Assembly: GCA_002794465.1 (NCBI GenBank)
Contig: MTSL01000146.1
Location: forward strand, 12,628-44,627
DNA length: 32,000 bases
Source of the DNA: Paramicrosporidium saccamoebae KSL3
Taxonomy: Eukaryota; Fungi; Cryptomycota
Reading direction: 5' to 3'
Below, piece after piece: positions 12,750 to 31,518 of the stretch. The number at the start of each line of letters is the position of its first letter. Positions within the stretch are counted from its first letter, which is position 1. Under the pieces are notes generated by a model that ran no database searches, was not told the DNA's origin, and was given only the letters and a program-made list of their open reading frames with translations. The translations under genes and the position numbers were made by a program.

Positions 12750-13570
12750 ATGCCACTCCCAAAGTCCAAAGCGTTTTGGGCATTTGCATCAACAGTTTCC
12801 ATTTCAGTGGTAGCTGTTCTTTATGACCGGCAGAGGTTGAAGGCCGTTAGAAGCCGTTATATTGAAGAAGCAACTGCCATGGGACTGCAGCCTTTGTTGC
12901 AAGCACCTAGAAAAGTTACGCTAGTCTCCTTTGCCAATGATAACATTGAGGCTCGCAAGATTAGAAAGCTTTGGCGCTCTTATGCCGTTGATCTCTTTAC
13001 TTTTGCTGGATGCGATTACCAACTGATTGAATGCAATGCGGTAGCGCTGGATAAAGAGCTTGACAAGCGTCTTCCAGTGCCAGAGGGTGAAGCGCCACCC
13101 GAGGAAAAGACTATTGCAAAGTTGGTTACGCCGGATAATTGGATACGCCCTATGATGCTAGAGTGGATGCAGAGAATTAATGGAAAGAGCGCGCTGTTTC
13201 CGCTTCCCTCGGACACTACTGAGGCAACACTACTAAAGATGCGGCAGGAGATGCGACCTGAGCCAAAGAGTCTAACATTCTTTGAGGACGGGATTGTTGC
13301 CCTAGAAAGAAACTCTTATGGCTCCATGATAGACGGCGTAAGGGATTTCGATAGCGATGTAGGCACAAAGAGTGTGCCTCAACTGGGCTACATTCCTTGT
13401 GACACTGTTAAATCTTGGAGGTCGAGCATTTATTACGTACGATTGGGTTTGGTATTTTATATTTCTAGTTTTTCAGAAAGTCTGAATTGGCAGAGAAAAT
13501 TGGCCATGCTACTATGGATGTTTTGCGTGAAAGGGTCCGTCCCGACGGATACCATAAGAGTTATCATTAA
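12750..13570 (+). CDS. TIM54: Mitochondrial inner-membrane translocase TIM22-complex subunit Tim54
   Basis: LPKSKAFWAF-TM-YDR...PRKVTL...LWRSYAVDLFTFAGCDYQLI matches the Tim54 N-terminus. The 32-nt intron 13437..13468 gives IYYFFRKSELAEKIG...SYH*, with the stop ending at 13570. Confidence 0.75.
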
Positions 13571-13588
13571 AGCATTTTCTTTGTTCTC

Positions 13589-14364
13589 ATGGAATCATCA
13601 ACGGAGCTACGGAGCTTACTGGTAGACAATGCTGTTAAATTTTTGCAGGATCCCCAGGTGCGCAGTAGTAGCGTGGAGAGGCAGTTGACGTTTCTCAAGA
13701 GTAAGGGTCTAACTGAGGCTGAGATTGATGAGGCTATGAAGCGGGCAGGAAGCCTGATTAGCGCGACTGGCACTCCGCCGCCCTTGCCCTCAGGTCCGCC
13801 GCCAAGTCGAGCCATGGCACAGGCCAAGTTTGACTGGGGGAAACTTTTCCTTGTGCTTGCCTTCATCGGGAGCACTGGGGCGGCCTTGTCTCAGACAATA
13901 TTGGGGGTATGTTTGATCGGATTGCCTAATGCTAGAAATCGCTACTGGATTGGTGGAAGAGGATCAGAGCCAAAGTATCCGAATCGACTGGCATTAAGGA
14001 AGAGTTGGAAAAGATACGTGAAACGCAGGCTGCACTAGAAGTGAGTCTACAGAGTGTCGCTCAGCTACGTGAGACGCAGGCTGCATTAGAGGTGAGTCTA
14101 CAGAGTGTCGCTCAGATACAAAAGACACAGGCCGTGTTGGAGGCAAGCCTGCAGAATGTCTCTCAGATACAAAAGACACAGGGAACATTAGAGACAAACT
14201 TGCAAAATGTCAGTCAAAAGCTCACTGCGGACATTGAGGGACTAAAAGCCTCTCAAAACTATTTGTACCAGGATTTGGTTCGTGAACTTGAGGATTTGCG
14301 CGAAGAGGCCATCGCCACTGTGCCAATCAACGTCAATGATGATCAAGAAAAGGTACAAGTGTAA
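13589..14364 (+). CDS. PEX14: Peroxisomal membrane docking protein Pex14
   Basis: LVDNAVKFLQDPQV...FLKSKGLTEAEIDEAM (Pex14_N), a Pro-rich linker and a TM segment. The 29-nt intron 13907..13935 joins the coiled-coil ORF 14005..14364. Confidence 0.9.
14020..14217 (+). repeat. 51-bp (17-aa) coding tandem repeat x4 in the PEX14 coiled coil
   Basis: Units start at 14020, 14071, 14122 and 14173: ETQAALEVSLQSVAQLR / ETQAALEVSLQSVAQIQ / KTQAVLEASLQNVSQIQ / KTQGTLETNLQNVSQ. Confidence 0.9.
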
Positions 14365-14470
14365 ATAATGGGTTATACCGAACCAGACAGTAAGGCGATA
14401 AAGGTCCTTTAATGTTTAACACCAAACCCTTATCGAATTAATCTTTGTCATAATCCCTGCTACGGCTGCG

Positions 14471-15284
14471 ATGGCAAACTACATAGACGTTGGTCAGCCC
14501 AACTCGACCTTATATATACAGAACCTGAATGAAAGAGTTACTCCAAAAAGTCTGTGTAGTCAGTTGAAAAAGACATTTGGAGTGTTTGGAGAGATTCTTG
14601 ACGTTGTCGCGAAACGACGTGTGGCCTTGCGGGGACAGGCTTTTGTTCTGTTCCGAGACATGGAGGCGGCTCGCCAGGCCATAGAGACCCTTCAGGGAGA
14701 TAGATTATATGGAAAATCAATGGTGATCAAATATGCAAAATACAAGTCAGACGTCATCAGCAAAGCTGATGGCACATATGAGATTGAGAGGCGTCGACGC
14801 GAGCAGGACAGGAGTAAGCCGTTGGGGATGATTCGCTTACTTTTTAGTTGAACGGTCGCGTCATCCCCGCATGACCCGGAGACAAATGCTAGCGCAAATG
14901 GCCGCTAACCCGGGAATGCAAGGAATGTCAAGTTTGCCCATGGCCGGCTTGCCAATGCACATGGGACCTGGAATGGGCGGATTTGGGATGAGTGGGCCTG
15001 GAAGTGGTCCCTCCCTCGGGCCTCAAATGGTGGGAGGAGAGCTGCAGCTTCCAAACAAGGTCTTGTACTTGCAGAATCTGCCGGAAGGAACTACTGAGAA
15101 ACAACTTGTGGAAGTGTTTAAAAAATATCCAGGATTTGTAGAGATGCGCCTTGTGCCGAATCGTCCAGATGTAGCCTTTGCTGAATACGAGAGTGAGGCA
15201 CAGGCGGTTGTTGCTCGCCAGGCTGCCGAAACACACGAAATTCAACCCGGAGTCAATCTGCGGGTGGCATTTGCACGTCGCTGA
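14471..15284 (+). CDS. U1A/U2B'' family snRNP protein (two RRMs)
   Basis: PNSTLYIQNLNE...LRGQAFVLF...MVIKYAKYKSD and PNKVLYLQNLPE...FVEMRLVPNRPDVAFAEY. 34-nt intron 14814..14847. U1A and U2B'' cannot be separated by eye. Confidence 0.9.
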
Positions 15285-15489: not shown

Positions 15490-15780
15490 TTACTCACTGA
15501 TGACGTTTGGATCAATTTTTACAGATATGAGCCGTCTGTACTTTTCGATAAATTCAGTCCTTGTCTGTATTTCGTCTTGTACCTTTTTTCGGTCTTTCAG
15601 GGCGACAGTCGAATCGTAAGGCTTTTGAATATCTGGCAATCGGTTCATGTACTGTTCAAGAGTATCCATTTTCTGAAGTAGGCCATTGCAAACATTAAGT
15701 ATCTTTCCGTAGTTGTTATGATTATCCAACAACTCTAGGACGTGAATAAGGTCAATGGTTAGCTCGCTATTATCCAACAT
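15490..15780 (-). CDS. Small helical protein, possibly Mediator subunit Med9-like
   Basis: ATG at 15780, 96 aa. LLQKMDTLEQYMNRLPDI...VQDEIQTRTEFIEKYRRL resembles the Med9 pattern (K-x-q...lPGI...l-eqir-k-ell-kY). By-eye match only. Confidence 0.4.
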   Translation of the reverse strand: MLDNSELTIDLIHVLELLDNHNNYGKILNVCNGLLQKMDTLEQYMNRLPDIQKPYDSTVALKDRKKVQDEIQTRTEFIEKYRRLISVKIDPNVISE

Positions 15781-15954
15781 GAACAAGTGAGCGAGTGAGC
15801 GAGTAGCGATATATCAAACCAAGGCAAGAACTGAGGTTTGACGAGCCAAAAAGTCGGTACCTGACGAGTCTACTATTTTCAAAAGTTGAACTGTAACGGA
15901 CCAACGCTTAGTCTTTAAAAACTCGAACTAACAATTCACAGCAACAAAAGTTAA

Positions 15955-16952
15955 TTAATTGTGGTTTGTACCAGATTCTGCTAGAATAAACTGTACAGTT
16001 GCAGCCAAATCAAATTTGGGCGACCATTCCCAGTCTTTTCTGGCATTACTGTCATCAAGTATGTGAGGCCAGCTATCAGCAATAGCCTGTCTATGATCAG
16101 GCTTATAGTTAACAGACATGGTCTTTCCCGTTGCCGTTTCAATTGCGGCCCGTAGTGTTCCAGGATTGAAAGACATTGCTTGAATGTTGTAGACGGACCT
16201 AGTCAGTCTTTCACGAGGCACCGACATTAGCTTGATTATGCCTTCAATACAGTCGTCAATATGAACCATGGGGAGCGTAGTGTCGGCACGCAGGAAACAA
16301 TTATACTCGCCGGAGATGGCGGCACGAACCATCTCGATGGCATAATCTATCGACTATTAGTATTGCAAGACTGAAAAACCTGTGGTTCCAGTCCCAGCAG
16401 ACGCATTGGCAGAGAGAACTCCAGGGAGTCGGATCGATCTAAAGTCGACTCCATATCGGCGATGAAAGTAGTCACCCAAGAGCTCGTTGTATACCTTGGT
16501 CGTTCCGTACAGGAACTGAGGTGCCATGATGGTTGTATCAGAGGCCGTCTTAGGCGTATCAGGTCCGAATGCAGCAATTGTGGACGGGCAGAATAGACGG
16601 AAACGGTACTTTTGCGCCAGCTGCAGCATGTGGACAAAGCTGTCGACATTGACCTTTAGGGTTCTGACAGCAGCAGACCAGTCCTTCTCCGCTGCCCCAG
16701 ATAGGATTGCAGGCAGATGAAAAACCCACTCGGGCTTATAGTCTTCAATAATCTTTTTCGCATTTTTCATAATGGTAATGTCACTTTGTTCAAACGTGCC
16801 AATGTGTTCCGGACCGGTGGCAGAAATGTCCACTCCAACCACAGTGGCGCCTTTGAAGGCTTTGCTCAAGGCTGTCCCAATTTGACCGTTGCATCCTACA
16901 ACGTCATCGTATGTGAAGGTGTGCCTGTGATCAGAACTCGAGATGGCGTCAT
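15955..16952 (-). CDS. TDH: L-threonine 3-dehydrogenase, SDR/NAD-epimerase type
   Basis: The spliced product starts MTPSRVLITGCNGQIG (GxxGxxG) and contains PSTIAAFG, YGTTK (YxxxK), FRSIRLPG, GTTDYAIEM, RQAIADSWP and DDSNARKDW. Introns 16896..16924 (GC-AG, 29 nt) and 16347..16379 (GT-AG, 33 nt). Confidence 0.88.
16896..16924 (-). other. GC-AG intron (29 nt) in TDH
   Basis: gcacaccttc...gttgtag. Removal restores the Rossmann motif VLITGCNGQIG; unspliced, the frame stops at TAG. Confidence 0.75.
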
Positions 16953-17002
16953 TTAGCACTGCAATAAGGACAGGGGGAGTAGGAGTAGAGTCGGGGTTTA
17001 TT
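16953..17002. promoter_or_regulatory. Putative 50-bp bidirectional promoter between TDH and KBL
   Basis: Only 50 nt separate the TDH ATG (16952, -) and the KBL ATG (17003, +). The spacer is purine-rich on the + strand (ggacagggggagtaggagtagagtcgggg). Promoter function is inferred. Confidence 0.55.
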
Positions 17003-18296
17003 ATGTTGGGAATCTTTCGACCATCATTGCAGCTATTGTCCCGTAGCCAATTTTACAAGAGGCTAGTGCAAGATTTGGATGCCATGAAAGCATCTGGGCT
17101 GTACAAAGACGAGCAAGTCATTGCCTCTCCCCAATCCAACAGTGTAAAGGTGCAAGGGGAAAATTTGATTAATTTCTGTGCCAACAACTATCTCGGTCTT
17201 TCAAACCATCCTGGTAATATTGAAAACGCCATGTAATTCCCGTAGAGCTTGTTGAGGCTGGAAAGCATGCCTTGGAGTCTCGTGGGGCGGGGATGAGCTC
17301 GGTGAGATTTATTTGTGGTACGCAAGACCTTCACAAGAAGCTGGAGGCAAAAATTTCCGAATTCCATGGAACCGATGACACAATTCTCTACACGAGTTGT
17401 TTTGATGCAAATGCAGGTATTTTCGAAACATTGCTGGGAGCAGAAGATGCAGTCATTTCTGATGCCCTAAATCACGCATCCATAATTGATGGAATACGAC
17501 TTTGTAAAGCGCAAAGATTGCGTTACAAGCACAATGATATGGATGACCTCGAGAGATTATTGAAGGATAATCGAGAAAAGGCCCGGACCATGCTTATCGC
17601 AACTGATGGCGTATTTAGCATGGATGGCGACTTGGCCAAGCTGCCCGAAATCTGTCATTTAGCTCGAAAATACGATGCGCTTGTGTTTGTAGATGACAGT
17701 CACGCCACTGGGTTCATTGGTTCTACGGGTCGCGGAACGGCAGAGCATTTTAATCTCGAAAAGGAGGTGGACATTATCTCTTCCACTCTTGGAAAGGCGC
17801 TTGGAGGCTCGTCCGGTAAGTCACTTTGGGAGCGTTGGTTCATCTTCTAGGCGGGTATACCACAGGACGATCTGAGGTCATATCTACTCTTCGACAGCGC
17901 AGCCGGCCATATTTATTCTCCAACAGCCTTCCTCCGGTGATTGCCTCGTTTGCGCTGAAAGCACTGGAGCTCGTATCTTCTCGGCCGGAACTTTGTATTG
18001 CTGTAAATGAAAATGCGGTGCATTTCCGAAAAAGCATGACAGCCAAAGGATTCAAGATTATGGGAAACGCCAGTCATCCCATTTGTCCAGTACTGATTGG
18101 CGACGCCGTGATTGCCGGCAAGATGGCCGCAGAACTGCGAGCTTGTGGCATATTTGTGATTGCATTTAGCTACCCCGTGGTGCCTCACGACCTTGCTCGA
18201 ATCCGCGTCCAATTATCGGCTTCTCACACCAAAAAGCAAATTGACAATGCTGTTGCAGAATTCGAGCGTATAGGCAAGAAATATAATGTTATCTAA
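17003..18296 (+). CDS. KBL: 2-amino-3-ketobutyrate CoA ligase (glycine C-acetyltransferase)
   Basis: [63 protein letters not shown] (PLP Lys), [20 protein letters not shown]. Introns 17214..17245 (32 nt) and 17816..17850 (35 nt). N-terminus [15 protein letters not shown] resembles a presequence. Confidence 0.93.
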
Positions 18297-24537: not shown

Positions 24538-25017
24538 GACGAGATGTATCAATTAACGCTAGGCCTTTACATGAGCCTCCAAATTGCGGCGGAGACCAAA
24601 TAAAGGAGCTTTTTAACTGATAGTTGTAGTCGCGCTGATGGACTACCTGTCACATTTTTGGAAAAGATTTTACCAAGGACGCTAGGAAATCCCTGTAACT
24701 AGGCTATAGTGATAACGCGGAGCACTATCCAAGCAGATGGTAGTTGATAACAACTTGCCGCTTGCTATTTATCCAGTCACACAACTGATCTACTCGAGAA
24801 ATTCAAATTTATACTAATCGATTTGGAGACTTTATGGCTATTGCATTATTAGTGCCCAGCACTCTAGGCCGCTGTCGGTATATGCATTTCCAAGATACTC
24901 AATGTTCACGAATCTAGAGTTTATTGAAAGAAAGGTTATCTTGATTTATCAGTGATGTAAGCGCCTGAATTATCAGGGTACTCGAGAGGCATGCCAGTAC
25001 AACTTTTGGTGCAATCC

Positions 25018-25863
25018 TTAGTTGTTACGGCCTCTTAATTGGCGAAAGTAATCGTGGCAGCCAAGTAGAATAGGGTCCATTAGCAGTTGGCAGCATTGGC
25101 AAAACAAACGTGACGCACGGTCATACCAGAAACTTTTTATATCGTGGTGGAAAAATACGATCATGTAATGCATCAGGAATAACTCGCCCTCGGGTCCTTC
25201 CAAGGCGCACATATGCACACCCGAGAACATTCGAGTGCATAACTTTCCATCCAAGAACATTTTTTCTCTCCACAAACCAGGTGGTGCAAAAATAAGGATG
25301 AAAGTTTGTACCTGTACAGCCAGAGCAAACCCCATCATGAAAAATATAATAGTACTGATGCCGAGGAAGCAACCAGTACAAAGCAACGCAGCCAGCATTA
25401 GGAATGGGGCAGCGTCAGTGGACAAGGCGACGAGCCAGCCTAACTGTTTCTTGTACTTAGTTGCATGGCGAAGCTGTACATACCGACTTTTCAGACATCT
25501 CACCTCATCGCGACTGTCATAGTATGCCAAAATCAAGCCATCAGGTGCATCCCAGACGGAAAAAAAGAGACCAAGGTGTTTCAAATCATACCAGCCAAAG
25601 TGCTGAACTTTATCTGTGGGCTGAAACTTGGCGACTGTAAAAGAGCGGAGACTGGCCCGTTCAATGAGCCATGTTAAAGGCACACCGGCAACAAAGCCAA
25701 CCCAGATGAAAGTGTAGCTGATCCAGCCCCAGAAAGGATAACATATATTGACGACGGTCCAGGCGATGAACAGCAGCATTAATGTATCGATGATAATACA
25801 AATGCATTTTACCAGCTTCGGGGCAATTGTGCTTCCCTTGGTGGGCTTGAATGTGAGATACAT
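25018..25863 (-). CDS. Unknown multi-pass membrane protein, family A copy 1
   Basis: About 4 hydrophobic segments in two hairpins; LEGPEGELFL and CQCC motifs. First ATG is 25863 (MYLTFKPTKG); the track start at 25911 is TTG. Confidence 0.75.
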   Translation of the reverse strand: MYLTFKPTKGSTIAPKLVKCICIIIDTLMLLFIAWTVVNICYPFWGWISYTFIWVGFVAGVPLTWLIERASLRSFTVAKFQPTDKVQHFGWYDLKHLGLFFSVWDAPDGLILAYYDSRDEVRCLKSRYVQLRHATKYKKQLGWLVALSTDAAPFLMLAALLCTGCFLGISTIIFFMMGFALAVQVQTFILIFAPPGLWREKMFLDGKLCTRMFSGVHMCALEGPEGELFLMHYMIVFFHHDIKSFWYDRASRLFCQCCQLLMDPILLGCHDYFRQLRGRNN

Positions 25864-26235
25864 TGTCAAGCGGAGAAGTTGGTGCAACTCTTTGGATGTA
25901 TTTTTGTCCAATGGGAGTGACTCCTGAATGATAACGTGAGATGGCTATTTGTAGAACAAGGCGGCGATTAGTCCATTGAGTAACAACGACTTGATGTAAT
26001 TTTGTGATCCCAGTCATTTAAATCACTATTGTCTACATAGATACAGTGCAATGGAACACTGTATGGTTACGGAACTGTAGAAGAAGGACCAATAGACTTT
26101 CTTGATCCTCTCATCTGATGCGCATGGCCAATCATCAAACTTGCCTATGGTGGTTGCCATGGTGACGGCTATTTTTAGGATCTTGATTATTTTCTATAAA
26201 TACCTTGACTCAGCCACTGTGTCATCATCGACACG

Positions 26236-27424
26236 ATGCAAACCATTGCTACCGTCTTCACGATCATGGGCGCGATTGCTGCTGGTCTGCTACTCTGTCT
26301 GGAAGGCCTAAAGGAACTTGTTGGGCATCACAAATGGCTCAACGCACTCAAGTTTATGCTGTGTCTCGTTGTGCTATTTGGAGGACCGGTAGCAGCGGCG
26401 GATGCGGCCGTTTGGTCTTATGTGGTGGGAGGAGTGTTGGTTCTTGTTGCTTTCGCACTCCTTCTTGGGCGCCATCTGCGCAAATATCATCAGAGGAAGA
26501 AGCTTGTCGGGCATCTCACCAACTTGCGCTCCGGAATTACAATGTGGGATGCCTCGATGAGTTTCGACCAAGCCCTATCGGTTTGCCATGCTCCGATTGT
26601 ACTTATGGTTATAGATTGCTGTTGAGCGTTATCCGGGAGTTGGTCCAGAACTCATTGCCCAACTGCCCATTCAACTTTTGAGAAGGGTCTTTGAGACGCG
26701 CTTGGCCGAGTGCCAGCAACTCACCTTTGAGGACTTTAAAGCAGAATGCCTCTGTGACATGTCGTTCTACGATATGAGCGGTTTTGGCAGGAACGCCGCC
26801 TTGCTGCTCTTTGTAGAACCATCGCAAGTTGCAGAATGTTGCCAATGGTTCGTTAAATGTACCGTCATATGGAAGGCATACAAGAAAGTTAAAGGCGCGG
26901 GGAGAGTTAGTATTCTCCGGTATATGTGGACGAACAGCGTCTTTAATGCGGACATTAGAGCAAGTTGCACCCTGCACTCCATCAGCAACATGAACTTGGA
27001 GCTGCAAGATAAGCTCTATCGAGCTTTATTTACCGAGAACCCTAAAGACCCATGGATAATGGCCAACCTACCCAAGCCATCAGATATCTATAACAGCCCC
27101 CTATGTGGAGATGCCGAATCCCCCGTGTCTTCGGACAGGGAAAACACCCAGCGGCCCGTGACTGTTTCACTGGAGGACTGGTATGCTATGGGTGTGTATG
27201 CAGAATGCCGGTTTTGTAGGTTCTGTCCACCCGATATAAAAATTGTCCCACATGCCATCGGCAAGACTATGAGGCATTTGTATCCATGGGCCCGACACTG
27301 TGGTGCATGTGGATATAATGTCATGAAATTTGGTCTGGTGGAAGGTTCAATATCCGTGGTGGCTGTGGATGAAGTGGCGCAGAGTACTGCCGGTACAGAC
27401 AATCAGATCCGTGAAGATAAGTGA
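26236..27424 (+). CDS. Unknown membrane-anchored Cys-rich protein, family B copy 1 (about 385 aa spliced)
   Basis: The 34-nt intron 26581..26614 (gtttgc...ttatag) joins ORF 26236 in frame to ORF 26678. Three N-terminal hydrophobic segments; C-terminal CRFC...CGAC. TATAAATA at 26195. Confidence 0.65.
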
Positions 27425-28012
27425 GATTGTAACAAAAAACCGACCAAGTTAGTGTACTAATGATAGTTAGAAAGAGGCATTTACTGAATAGAAATAGCTG
27501 TTATCGTACGCTGTCCAAGTTTTGCCAAAGGAGTTATTGTGGGCTTTGGCCGTGAGAATATAGCGTGCCAGTCCATAATGCATAGCTTGGTAGGTGATCT
27601 TTTACCAATATTTATGGCCAGAGCCTAATTGAGTCCAGATTTCAAATGGATGAGTCAAGTAAAATATTTAATATTCGAGTCACTTCAGATGGGCCGGATC
27701 GTGTGGGCATAGCCTAACCGCACACAGGGATGTTCTCATTGTGATGCATAGGAATGATTAGTAGGTATGGAAGAAGTAAAATTTCATTCCCCCAATTCGA
27801 AAGTTTTGTGTCAGATTTACAATAGCCGATGGCCGATCTTCCACAGAAAATTGCAACTCCACAGGTGTCGATTGGCTATATGACACCAGAACTAACGAAA
27901 CGTGTTCACCTGATGGCCAATGGATTTGATGGGTTGCAGCCAGTCCTTTCAGCTCTTTTGTACTAGTCTCTGTTCAGTTGCGCTACAATTAGCGGATGGT
28001 ATTTACGGCAAG

Positions 28013-28828
28013 CTACGGGTTCAGAGCAAGTAGAATGGGATCCATTAATAGGTGGCAACACTGACAGTGCGCTCTCGCCGCCAATTCGAACCAGGATCTT
28101 CTTTCATAGTGATCAAATATGACCACCTTGAGGACTGTCAGGAACAGTTCACCCTCTGGTCCCTCTAGAACACACGTCATTATACCAAGAAATTTCCGTG
28201 TGCACATTTTCCCATCCAGGAACATCCTGTCCTTCCATAGAAACATTGCCATAAAGCGGAGGCACACTGTGCGCACCTGTCCTGCCAGCACAAAGCCCAT
28301 CAGAAAGAATACGATAACGCTGACGCCGAGGAAATAGCCCGCGCAGAGAGATGCAGCCAATAGCGCAAACGGGATGGCATCGGTGACCACGACGATGAGC
28401 CAGCCCAGCCATTTCTTGTACTCTTCTTCGTCGCCAAGAAAGACATGACGTTTCCTCAGACAATCCACTTCATCAAATTTATGATACTTTCCCAAAACCA
28501 ATGTGTCGGGTTTCTCCCAGACCGAGAAGAGAAACCCGAGATGTTTCAAATCATGAAGACCGTTGGACATGAGTTTGTCTCCAGGACGAAATCGGGCAGA
28601 CATGAAAAAGTAGATGCGAAAATATCTGATAATGTAAGTAAAGAGGGCGTAGGGAATAAAGCCGACCCAGATGGAAGCATAGATGATCCATCCCCAGAAA
28701 GGATAGCACATGTTAACAATGGTCCATGCCATGAGTAGTAGCAGTAATGCATCGATGATAATACAGAGACAGTTTACCAGTTTTGGGGCAATTGTGCTTC
28801 CCTTGGTGGGCTTGAATGTGAGATACAT
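28013..28828 (-). CDS. Unknown multi-pass membrane protein, family A copy 2
   Basis: Paralog of copy 1. ATG at 28828; TATAAATA at 28911-28918 on the - strand. Confidence 0.75.
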   Translation of the reverse strand: MYLTFKPTKGSTIAPKLVNCLCIIIDALLLLLMAWTIVNMCYPFWGWIIYASIWVGFIPYALFTYIIRYFRIYFFMSARFRPGDKLMSNGLHDLKHLGFLFSVWEKPDTLVLGKYHKFDEVDCLRKRHVFLGDEEEYKKWLGWLIVVVTDAIPFALLAASLCAGYFLGVSVIVFFLMGFVLAGQVRTVCLRFMAMFLWKDRMFLDGKMCTRKFLGIMTCVLEGPEGELFLTVLKVVIFDHYERRSWFELAARAHCQCCHLLMDPILLALNP

Positions 28829-28910
28829 GGCCGAACGGAGAAGCTGATGTGGCTCTTTGCTTGTGTTGTTGTCCAATGGGAGTGACTCCTGAATGGTAAC
28901 GTGGGATGGC

Positions 28911-28918
28911 TATTTATA
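28911..28918 (-). promoter_or_regulatory. TATA box (TATAAATA) of family A gene, with CCAAT about 20 bp upstream
   Basis: The - strand reads gggccaatcgccaccttgttctataaatagcc. The equivalent sites are 31318-31325 (TATAAATA) and 25946-25953 (TACAAATA). Confidence 0.55.
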
Positions 28919-29188
28919 GAACAAGGTGGCGATTGGCCCATTGAGCAGCAGAGACTTGTTATAATCTTGTTTTATTCGTCAGAACTATTATTGTTTGCGT
29001 AGGCATAGCGCATTGAAATACTTGATGGCCACGGGACTGTAGAAACGGGACCAATGGATTTCCTTGATCCTCTCACTCTAATGCATGTGCGATCAATCAT
29101 TAAATTTCCCTACGGTCGTTGCTATTTTTAGAATATTGATTTTTTTCTATAACCATGTCGACTCTGCCCCTGGACCATCTTTGACGCG

Positions 29189-29949
29189 ATGCAAACTATC
29201 GCTACTGTCTCTGCGGTCACGGGCGCAATTGCTGCTGGCCTGCTACTCTGTCTGGGAGGCCTAAAGGATCTTGTAGAACCATCACAAATCGCGGGATGCT
29301 GTGATTGGTTTGTCGAATGTGCCACCATCTGGAAGGCATGCATCACATTCAAAGGCAAGAAACTGGTCAAAGCGCTTCGCTATATGTGGAATAATGACGT
29401 CCTCAATGAGGAAACTCAATCAAGCCTCGCATTAAGTGCCATCAGCCGCATGGAACTTGAGCGGCAGGAGGCGCTCTATTGGGCCCTTTTCATCGAGAAT
29501 CCAAAAAATGCATGGATAATGGCTAACTTGCCCAAACCCCCAGATCTCGATAGCGACCTCCCGTGTGGAGATGCTGAGTCTTCTGTGCCTACAGAGAGGG
29601 AAAACACCCAGCGGCCCGTGACTGTTTCATTGAGGACTGATATGTTAAGGGTGCGCATGCAGAATGTCGGTTTTGCGGTTTTCGTCCTCCCGATATAAAA
29701 ATTACTTTGTACGCCATCGGTAAGAAGATGAAGCACATGTATCCATGGCCCCGATGTTGCAGTGCTTGTGGGTATGATGCCGTGAAATTTGGACTGGCGG
29801 AGGGTTCAGCGCTCGTGGTTGCTGGCACAGACAGTGATGCTAAGACCGACAATCAGATCCGTGAAGACAAGCGAGACTGTAACGAAAGACCGACGTCAAG
29901 TCAGTGTAATAATGGTAGTTCAAAAGAACCATTTACTGGGTACAAATAA
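29189..29949 (+). pseudogene. Family B copy 2, internally deleted and frameshifted
   Basis: Lacks 493 bp of copy 1 (junction ttgt at 29271-29274). Has a 1-nt deletion near 29632 (ctggagg vs ttgagg) and TGG>TGA at 29638-29640. Confidence 0.8.
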
Positions 29950-30431
29950 CTGTTATCGTACATTAAGTTTTGCCAAAGGAGCCATTGCAGGCTTTGGTTG
30001 TGAAAATATTGAGAGCCATTCTACAGTACATAACTTGTCAGATGATCCCTTACCAGTATGTATGGCCAAAGTCTGCTTGGGCCCATATTTCAAATGGATG
30101 AATCAAGTAAAATTTCTAGTATTTGAATCACTTTAGATGGGCCGGATTGTGCGGGCCTCGCTTAACCATATATAGAGCAATGGTTAGAAAATATAGGATA
30201 AGTAAAATTCCATTCCCTCAATTCGAAATTTTCGCGTCAGATTTACAATAGCCGCTTGCCAAAAGCGCCGGTTGATTAGATGATACTAGAACTGAGATGA
30301 ATATACTCACCCGATGGCCAATGAGCTTGATGGGATGCAGTCAGTCCTTTCAGCCCGTCATTCAGCTCTTCATATGGGCCTCTGCTTGGTTGTAACGCAA
30401 TTAGCAGAATGGTATTTACGACACACTACAG

Positions 30432-31235
30432 TTAAAGTAGAAGGGAATCTCTTAATGAGTGGCAGCACTGACAGTGTACTCTCGCTGCTAACTCGAACCA
30501 GGCTCTTCTTTCATAGTGATCAAACATGACCACCTTGAGGACTGTCAGGAACAGTTCACCCTCTGGTCCCTCTAGAACACACGTCATTATACCAAGAAAT
30601 TTCCGTGTGCACATCCTTCCATCTAGAAACATCCTGTCCTTCCATAGAAACATTGCCATAAAGCGGAGGCACACTGTGCGCACCTGTCCTGCCAGCACAA
30701 AGCCCATCAGAAAGAATACGATAACGCTGACGCCGAGGAAATAGCCCGCGCAGAGAGATGCAGCCAATAGCGCAAACGGGATGGCATCGGTGACCACGAC
30801 GATGAGCCAGCCCAGCCATTTATTATACTCGTATTCATCGCCAAGAGAAATATATCGGCTCCTCAGACAGTCCACTTCATCGTCCTTGTCATAATAGCCA
30901 AGAATCAAAGAATCGGGCGTTTCCCAGGTCGAAAAGAGAAACCCGAGATGCTTCAAATTATGAAGATCGTTGGACATGAGCTTGTCTCCAGGACGAAACT
31001 TGGCGATCACGAAAGAACGGATACAAAAACGTCTGATGACCCAGGTAAAGAGTGCGTATGAAATAAAGCCAGCCCAGATGGAGGAGTAGATGATCCATCC
31101 CCAGAAAGGATAGCACATGTTAACAATGGTCCATGCCATGAGTAGTAGCAGTAATGCATCGATGATAATACAGAGACAGTTTACCAGTTTTGGGGCAATT
31201 GTGCTTCCCTTGGTGGGCTTGAATGTGAGATACAT
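30432..31235 (-). CDS. Unknown multi-pass membrane protein, family A copy 3
   Basis: Paralog; ATG at 31235; TATAAATA at 31318-31325 on the - strand. Confidence 0.75.
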   Translation of the reverse strand: MYLTFKPTKGSTIAPKLVNCLCIIIDALLLLLMAWTIVNMCYPFWGWIIYSSIWAGFISYALFTWVIRRFCIRSFVIAKFRPGDKLMSNDLHNLKHLGFLFSTWETPDSLILGYYDKDDEVDCLRSRYISLGDEYEYNKWLGWLIVVVTDAIPFALLAASLCAGYFLGVSVIVFFLMGFVLAGQVRTVCLRFMAMFLWKDRMFLDGRMCTRKFLGIMTCVLEGPEGELFLTVLKVVMFDHYERRAWFELAARVHCQCCHSLRDSLLL

Positions 31236-31518
31236 GGCCGAACGGAGAAGCTGATGTGGCTCTTTGCTTGTGTTGTTGTCCAATGGGAGTGACTCCTGAA
31301 TGGTAACGTGGGATGGCTATTTATAAAACAAGGCGGCGATTAGTGCATTAAGTAACAACGATGATGCAATTTTGTGATTCCGTTCATCTAAATTATTATT
31401 GTCTGTATAATACTAGGAAAGTCCTTGAGTGTCGCGGTTAATCCAGGGCATGGCTAAAATTGTACCATTGTAATTTTGTGCCATTGGGAATTTAGATGGG
31501 CTGTGCCATAGGGTGCTA

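Follow-up and report, generated by a model that had tools for sequence, protein, structure and literature searches.

The genes for an L-threonine 3-dehydrogenase (TDH) and a glycine C-acetyltransferase (KBL) lie head-to-head in Paramicrosporidium saccamoebae, a parasite of amoebae, with 50 nucleotides (nt) between their start codons. We studied them in the final 32 kb of contig MTSL01000146.1 (assembly GCA_002794465.1), referred to here as the window, which also supplies the coordinates. TDH is of the short-chain dehydrogenase/reductase (SDR) type and would convert threonine and NAD+ to 2-amino-3-ketobutyrate, and KBL would carry out the next step, from 2-amino-3-ketobutyrate to glycine and acetyl-CoA. 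The same arrangement was found in each of five related rozellid loci in which both sides of the pair are visible. Probably, TDH and KBL are vertically inherited eukaryotic genes that became linked in a rozellid ancestor and share a minimal bidirectional promoter. A literature search found no paper describing such a TDH-KBL pair in a eukaryote.

As read from the sequence, TDH is on the minus strand and has three exons encoding 311 amino acids. Exon 1 (16925-16952) is only 28 nt long and reads ATG ACG CCA TCT CGA GTT CTG ATC ACA G, encoding MTPSRVLIT and the first base of Gly10. Its ATG (16952-16950) has an in-frame TAA directly upstream. Intron 1 (16896-16924) is a 29-nt GC-AG intron, GCACAC...TTGTAG, inserted in phase 1 in the Gly codon of ITG. 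Exon 2 (16380-16895) opens with GA TGC AAC GGT CAA ATT GGG and encodes the Rossmann fold and the catalytic residues S114, Y139 and K143. Intron 2 (16347-16379; 33 nt, GT-AG) includes TACTAAT and interrupts the Asp codon of GTT|DYA in phase 1, and exon 3 (15955-16346) ends with the stop codon. Translation of the unspliced exon 1 would end after 18 codons, and the exon-2 frame offers no ATG of its own. Only with the GC-AG intron removed does the extended-SDR motif (TGxxGxxG) appear, as VLITGCNGQIG.

KBL is on the plus strand and likewise has three exons, encoding 408 amino acids. Exon 1 (17003-17213) ends in ...GLSNHP and is followed by a 32-nt phase-1 GT-AG intron (17214-17245), the splicing of which gives a gap-free alignment to the NCBIfam model NF005394 and to E. 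coli KBL. Exon 2 (17246-17815) carries the pyridoxal phosphate (PLP)-lysine motif STLGKALGG, intron 2 (17816-17850) is 35 nt long, GT-AG and again in phase 1, and exon 3 (17851-18296) includes the stop codon. The spacer between the two ATGs, 16953-17002, presumably serves as a minimal bidirectional promoter. Both of its strands lack an ATG, and it has G-runs when read in the KBL sense, which are C-runs in the TDH sense. Upstream of TDH, the first ATG on the TDH strand lies at a distance of about 62 nt and opens a nine-codon upstream open reading frame (ORF). On the KBL strand the corresponding ATG is the in-frame one at 16943-16945 (+), inside TDH exon 1 on the opposite strand, which would add 20 residues and overlap the TDH start codon. 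We rejected it as the KBL start, as none of the four relatives compared (L001, L005, L007 and L013) has an upstream in-frame ATG. KBL of L005, the closest relative, begins MLGPIRPSL, matching MLGIFRPSL at 17003 in the window. Together, these two observations identify 17003 as the conserved KBL start. The ATG at 16943 would be usable only if KBL transcription began inside TDH.

The relatives, which we designate by L numbers, were found by protein search and are environmental contigs from Logan, ENA and JGI assemblies. Their proteins are 47-73% (TDH) and 59-78% (KBL) identical to those of the window, far closer than the proteins of named organisms, and the short introns and gene neighbourhood that they have in common with the window mark them as Paramicrosporidium-like rozellids. 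Spacers were measured after TDH exon 1 and the KBL start had been located in each locus, and are 66 nt in L001-3, 167 nt in L004, 23 nt in L005, 56 nt in L007/8 and 50 nt in L013/14. In L006 and L009 the contig ends beside TDH and the KBL side lies outside the view. A metagenome scan with the rozellid TDH alignment returned only intron-less matches of about 40% identity, presumably prokaryotic, and added no rozellid locus. In five relatives TDH exon 1 is 19-70 nt long and ends in (L/I)ITG, and the Gly codon that is split in the window is likewise interrupted by a phase-1 intron in L001, L004, L005, L007 and L013. The donor of this intron is GT in four relatives and GC in L007 (GCATAT), which supports the GC donor in the window TDH. 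On this comparative evidence, we take the 29-nt GC-AG intron to be real. Immediately upstream of the conserved part of KBL in L004 (4649-4817 of that locus), we noticed a short ORF in another frame (MPLSQLF*) that looks like the N-terminus of KBL in the other lineages, which suggests a frameshift, an assembly error or a tiny intron at the 5' end of that gene.

The identity of both enzymes is supported by domain, structure and motif comparisons. In Pfam, the TDH domain is PF01370 (Epimerase) and not one of the zinc alcohol-dehydrogenase domains. Eighteen solved structures of SDR-type TDHs match the window protein over residues about 2-304, with E-values from 1.8e-76 (6jyg) to 6e-50 and about 1e-73 for the Trypanosoma brucei and mouse enzymes; the best match to a structure other than a TDH, GalE, reaches only 2.9e-12. 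No NCBIfam model for SDR-type TDH reached its cut-off on this protein. The TGxxGxxG motif and residues L7, T9, G10, G13 and G16 are invariant between the window TDH and 11 prokaryotic TDHs, as are S114, Y139, K143, T180-T181-D182 and S273-W274-P275, which are also kept in the rozellid alignment. The window protein carries both TDH-specific motifs, G(G/T)GTTDYA and IADSWP. For KBL, the curated equivalog models of glycine C-acetyltransferase give 605.8 bits (NF005394, cut-off 460) and 602.7 bits (TIGR01822, cut-off 493), and its scores on the BioF, SPT and ALAS models stay under their cut-offs. The full-length alignment with E. coli KBL (1fc4; 8.8e-151) keeps the PLP-lysine motif, NHASIIDG and DDSHA in register. 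We take the PLP-lysine and the active-site His and Asp residues to have the roles that they have in the E. coli structure. Both enzymes look catalytically intact.

The public annotation of the locus is different. The best match of the spliced TDH is PSACC_02134, and that of KBL is the P. saccamoebae protein named '2-amino-3-ketobutyrate coenzyme A ligase'. The PSACC_02134 model (396 amino acids; 15490-17232, minus strand) starts antisense within exon 1 of KBL, treats the first TDH intron as coding, omits 38 conserved residues (VYNELL...GTGTT) and fuses TDH to a small unrelated downstream ORF (15490-15786). The public KBL model is truncated to 317 amino acids, beginning at Met86 (about 17293) and ending at 18296 (+). 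If TDH did start elsewhere, as in PSACC_02134, the tight spacing would be a splicing artefact. The exon-2 frame is indeed open across TDH intron 1 and far upstream, and this is the frame that the public annotation uses. However, besides its omission and its fusion, the PSACC_02134 model is without L7, T9 and G10, which are invariant in the Rossmann beta1-Gly motif; the short exon 1 and its intron are common to five relatives, and the read-through frame of L013 is interrupted by a stop and offers no ATG. We therefore regard a misplaced TDH start as extremely unlikely. The public models of both genes are incorrect, and they hide the head-to-head arrangement. An earlier sequence-only reading of this DNA had proposed an exon 1 of 28 nt, the GC-AG intron and a spacing of 50 nt; all three hold and improve on the public annotation, and the identities that it gave to the two genes agree with the structure matches and equivalog scores. 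Metabolic reconstructions of Paramicrosporidium built on the wrong public models would mis-score threonine catabolism.

Introns at these loci are very short (29-35 nt in the window and 36-49 nt in L001, L004, L005, L007 and L013), and their donors are loose (GTTTTT, GTAATA and GCACAC). Several have a length divisible by three and no stop, so that prokaryote-style gene callers read straight through them. Another public model in the window, of 655 amino acids (12750-15284, plus strand), merges Tim54, a Pex14_N-domain protein and an RRM protein, which are separate genes in the relatives.

We compared the TDH-KBL spacer with those of the seven other divergent pairs in the window, which measure 919, 1030, 222, 291, 834, about 316 and about 360 nt from ATG to ATG, values that are approximate because some first exons may be mis-assigned. 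Head-to-head genes being divergent with less than 1 kb between their 5' ends, TDH-KBL belongs to this class, and it is the shortest of the eight pairs, all others being at least four times longer. The expectation of the sequence-only reading that other divergent pairs would lie about 100 bp apart was thus not borne out. The short spacer could have been produced by deletion bias rather than by shared regulation, in a pair that became adjacent neutrally through compaction and was then kept by a generally conserved gene order. We consider this neutral explanation possible but doubtful. In its favour, a block comprising IsoDH, SAM synthetase, kinase, adh_short, KBL, TDH, a small gene, RRM, Pex14, Tim54 and WD40 is collinear in the window, L001, L004, L013 and L006. 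The P. saccamoebae genome has about 3,750 genes (PMC5701793), so the chance of one named gene lying head-to-head with another named gene is about 1.3e-4; over a few hundred consecutive-step enzyme pairs, we estimate the probability of one chance adjacency per genome at about 0.1-0.3, which is not very unlikely. The weight of the argument thus rests on the shortest spacer, on conservation in five relatives and on the recurrent linkage in prokaryotes described below, which argues for a functional benefit of linkage.

Two relatives give some evidence against mere retention of gene order. In L007, a PigN-like membrane protein gene follows TDH and the order of the kinase and adh_short genes beside KBL is swapped, yet the pair is kept with its 56-nt spacer. 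In L013, a peptidase M3 gene is inserted between TDH and the RRM gene, and the pair is intact. Only these two loci, L007 with both flanks rearranged and L013 with an insertion beside TDH, separate the pair from background synteny.

Several points weigh against a shared promoter maintained by selection in the rozellids. Collinearity extends over about 12 genes in the core relatives, and over the whole neighbourhood in four of the five relatives that keep the pair, so the adjacency of TDH and KBL is not special there. The 167-nt spacer of L004 indicates that extreme tightness is not obligatory. Alignment of the spacers of five lineages revealed no conserved nucleotide motif. All of the relatives are environmental contigs. 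Finally, TDH has no presequence and KBL has a short one (see below), so that a common compartment is not certain. Rfam, tRNA and repeat scans of the locus found no RNA family, tRNA or significant repeat.

We then considered where else the two genes are linked. In Dimargaris cristalligena, Dissophora ornata and Fonticula alba, tblastn searches of the DNA up to 10 kb from TDH found no KBL, and they found none on the 15.7-kb contig of Tieghemiomyces parasiticus, which has less than 4 kb downstream of TDH. This suggests that the TDH-KBL linkage arose within the rozellid lineage. In all, the genes are head-to-head in five relatives and unlinked in these four organisms. Among the best 80 prokaryotic SDR-type TDH loci, kbl was found within 4 kb in 27; 17 of these pairs are co-directional, nine are divergent (mostly Cytophagales, Bacteroidota) and one is convergent. 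Many others of the 80 have a more distant Kbl/BioF-like gene directly downstream. Linkage in 27 of 80 loci indicates that tdh and kbl become linked repeatedly, in line with the conservation of tdh-kbl operons in several bacterial phyla (PMC9814548). The divergent SDR-type tdh/kbl pairs of Bacteroidota (L060, L063, L067, L070, L075, L076, L082, L087 and L096) are 90-1839 nt apart, and their hosts include Hymenobacter, Cyclobacteriaceae, Pontibacter and Roseivirga.

The existence of such loci raises the question of whether the rozellid pair is a relic of a horizontally acquired bacterial kbl/tdh locus that gained spliceosomal introns later. The two genes are neighbours in many prokaryotes, nine of the 27 linked pairs are even divergent, and the N-terminus of the window TDH is as short as those of prokaryotic TDHs. 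However, the TDH introns contradict this explanation. Dimargaris (L010), Tieghemiomyces (L015) and Fonticula (L012) have an intron at exactly the nucleotide of intron 2, after the first base of the Asp codon in GTT|DYA, and Dissophora ornata (L011) has one at that of intron 1, within the Gly codon (VTG|). Since position and phase are shared exactly with other Holomycota, both introns are old Holomycota introns that were differentially lost elsewhere, rather than short introns gained later by a bacterial gene. They are stronger evidence on the origin of TDH than the tree. In a neighbour-joining tree of 120 TDHs (Kimura-corrected distances, 200 bootstraps), the core rozellids form a clade with 100% support and group with L007 at 86%, and 39 prokaryotic sequences form a 93% clade without rozellids; the backbone was not resolved. 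The best named TDH matches are from fungi, Fonticula, Capsaspora and animals.

The evidence on KBL is more even. Its mean identity is 60.7% to bacterial KBLs and 60.1% to other eukaryotic KBLs, and in a neighbour-joining tree, the sample for which had no fungal KBL (none being among the 120 matches listed), the rozellid clade has 100%/75% support and the split between bacteria and the rest 44%, so that its position was not resolved (44% and 31% bootstrap). At 11 columns that separate the sampled eukaryotes from bacteria, the rozellids are eukaryotic at five and bacterial at about four, from which the origin of KBL leans weakly towards eukaryotes. The window genes have closer homologues than those of the divergent Bacteroidota loci (38-39% identity for TDH and 51-56% for KBL), and the genes flanking the pair are typical eukaryotic genes. 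Collectively, these results make a bacterial acquisition very unlikely. Of the two alternatives offered by the sequence-only reading, that of a conserved bidirectional pair is supported in structure and by the synteny in five relatives. That of a bacterial relic falls with the TDH introns, the TDH tree and the mostly co-directional order of the bacterial pairs; nesting within bacteria, which it had proposed as the sign of horizontal transfer, was not seen for TDH, and the KBL split has the 44% support given above.

In the favoured reading of a linked and co-regulated eukaryotic pair, TDH and KBL would have become immediate divergent neighbours in the ancestor of the Paramicrosporidium-like rozellids, and the arrangement would have been kept since. 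As a spacer of 50 nt is too short for two separate promoters, one common nucleosome-free region probably drives both genes. With the conserved start codons in use, both transcription start sites would lie within about 16946-17012, and the 5' ends would be very short or overlapping. A common open region would couple the expression, or dosage, and the inheritance of the two genes, and balanced expression would limit the build-up of 2-amino-3-ketobutyrate. This compound is unstable and decays to aminoacetone (PMC9814548). TDH and KBL catalyse consecutive steps that share a reactive intermediate, as expected of gene clusters under the toxic-intermediate model, which was proposed for linked metabolic genes in fungi (McGary et al. 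2013, as cited in PMC3914699). From these features we infer a shared promoter, co-expression and selection against the reactive intermediate. The P. saccamoebae genome paper (PMC5701793) reports expression data and makes no mention of the TDH-KBL locus, threonine, introns or intergenic distances.

To compare N-termini, we counted the residues that precede the TDH glycine motif (TGxxGQxG). There are 5-9 in the core rozellids, 9-15 in prokaryotes and 18-108 in other eukaryotes, here fungi, Fonticula, Capsaspora, animals and protists. KBL has about 12-15 extra N-terminal residues in rozellids (about 12 in the window) and 25-56 in the other eukaryotes. TDH of L007 (3172-3241 of that locus) has 22 residues before the motif, among them a presequence-like MTLLLPRVRSYATATKDK, and keeps an 18-residue basic extension. 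Thus, the core rozellid TDH seems to have lost its mitochondrial presequence. A bolder form of the favoured reading would make the pair a convergent eukaryotic counterpart of the bacterial tdh-kbl operon, obligatorily co-expressed from a common core promoter of 23-66 nt with overlapping 5' ends. Compaction would have taken the TDH presequence, and TDH would enter mitochondria bound to KBL, or else the pathway would be cytosolic, yielding acetyl-CoA and glycine from host threonine. We consider this combination unlikely as a whole. That host threonine serves the parasite as a source of acetyl-CoA and glycine is plausible in itself, an idea complicated by the apparent loss of the TDH presequence.

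TDH-KBL joins a known class of divergently transcribed metabolic gene pairs, and it is convergent with the bacterial operon. In the kbl-tdh operons of E. coli and Cupriavidus necator (PMC9814548), the same two activities are likewise supplied by adjacent genes, with the same rationale of an unstable intermediate. Like the window TDH, that of C. necator is an SDR-type enzyme, whereas E. coli TDH is of the zinc alcohol-dehydrogenase type. Most bacterial pairs are co-directional and polycistronic, as in the 17 linked loci above, whereas the window pair is divergent and separately transcribed, with two spliceosomal introns in each gene. Its linkage appears to have arisen independently of the bacterial operon and not to have been inherited from bacteria. 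The orthologous mitochondrial TDH and GCAT of animals and trypanosomes (mouse, 4yr9; T. brucei, 5k4q) act in the same pathway, and their genes are presumably on different chromosomes in both organisms. These and the other eukaryotic TDH and KBL proteins compared carry N-terminal extensions, in contrast to the window proteins, of which TDH has none and KBL only the short one noted above.

Closer in form are the divergent pairs niiA-niaD of Aspergillus nidulans (nitrite and nitrate reductase) and GAL1-GAL10 of yeast, which have shared promoters. They share with TDH-KBL the head-to-head layout and a pathway whose intermediate is harmful, a combination that fits the toxic-intermediate model, and a single intergenic region controls both genes, as one presumably does at the TDH-KBL locus. 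Their intergenic regions are about 0.7-1.2 kb long and have mapped activator sites, whereas the window spacer is 50 nt (23 nt in L005) and has no recognisable conserved element. A third comparison is with compacted microsporidian genomes, in which bidirectional pairs and overlapping transcription have reportedly been described (Williams et al. 2005; Peyretaillade et al. 2009). The TDH-KBL locus resembles them in its very short spacer, in its presumably very short 5' untranslated regions and in C-rich runs close before start codons. Microsporidian neighbours, however, are generally functionally unrelated, whereas the window pair encodes consecutive enzymes and has a spacer that is exceptional in its own neighbourhood. 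The C-runs were noticed by inspection of the 80 nt before several start codons: four to six consecutive C occur no more than about 60 nt ahead of the ATGs of TDH (16952, minus), the kinase (19861, plus), SAM synthetase (22674, minus), NSUN2 (7458, plus) and Efg1 (6367, plus). They recall the CCC-like signal known upstream of microsporidian genes.

The locus provides a clear example, in a eukaryote, of physical coupling between the genes for a two-step catabolic pathway, independent of the bacterial operon. For the argument that genes with a common reactive intermediate become linked by selection, it supplies an example from early-diverging fungi. The spacers of 23-66 nt would set an unusually small upper bound for a working bidirectional promoter in a fungus-related genome, and make the locus a convenient test object.

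Elsewhere in the window, 25000-31300 holds a tandem triplication with a unit of about 2.4-3.0 kb, the copies starting at 25063, 28028 and 30435 and being 61-94% identical. Each copy contains a minus-strand ORF starting MYLTFKPTKGSTIAP, which has no Pfam match, and in the first two copies this ORF is paired with a divergent plus-strand ORF.

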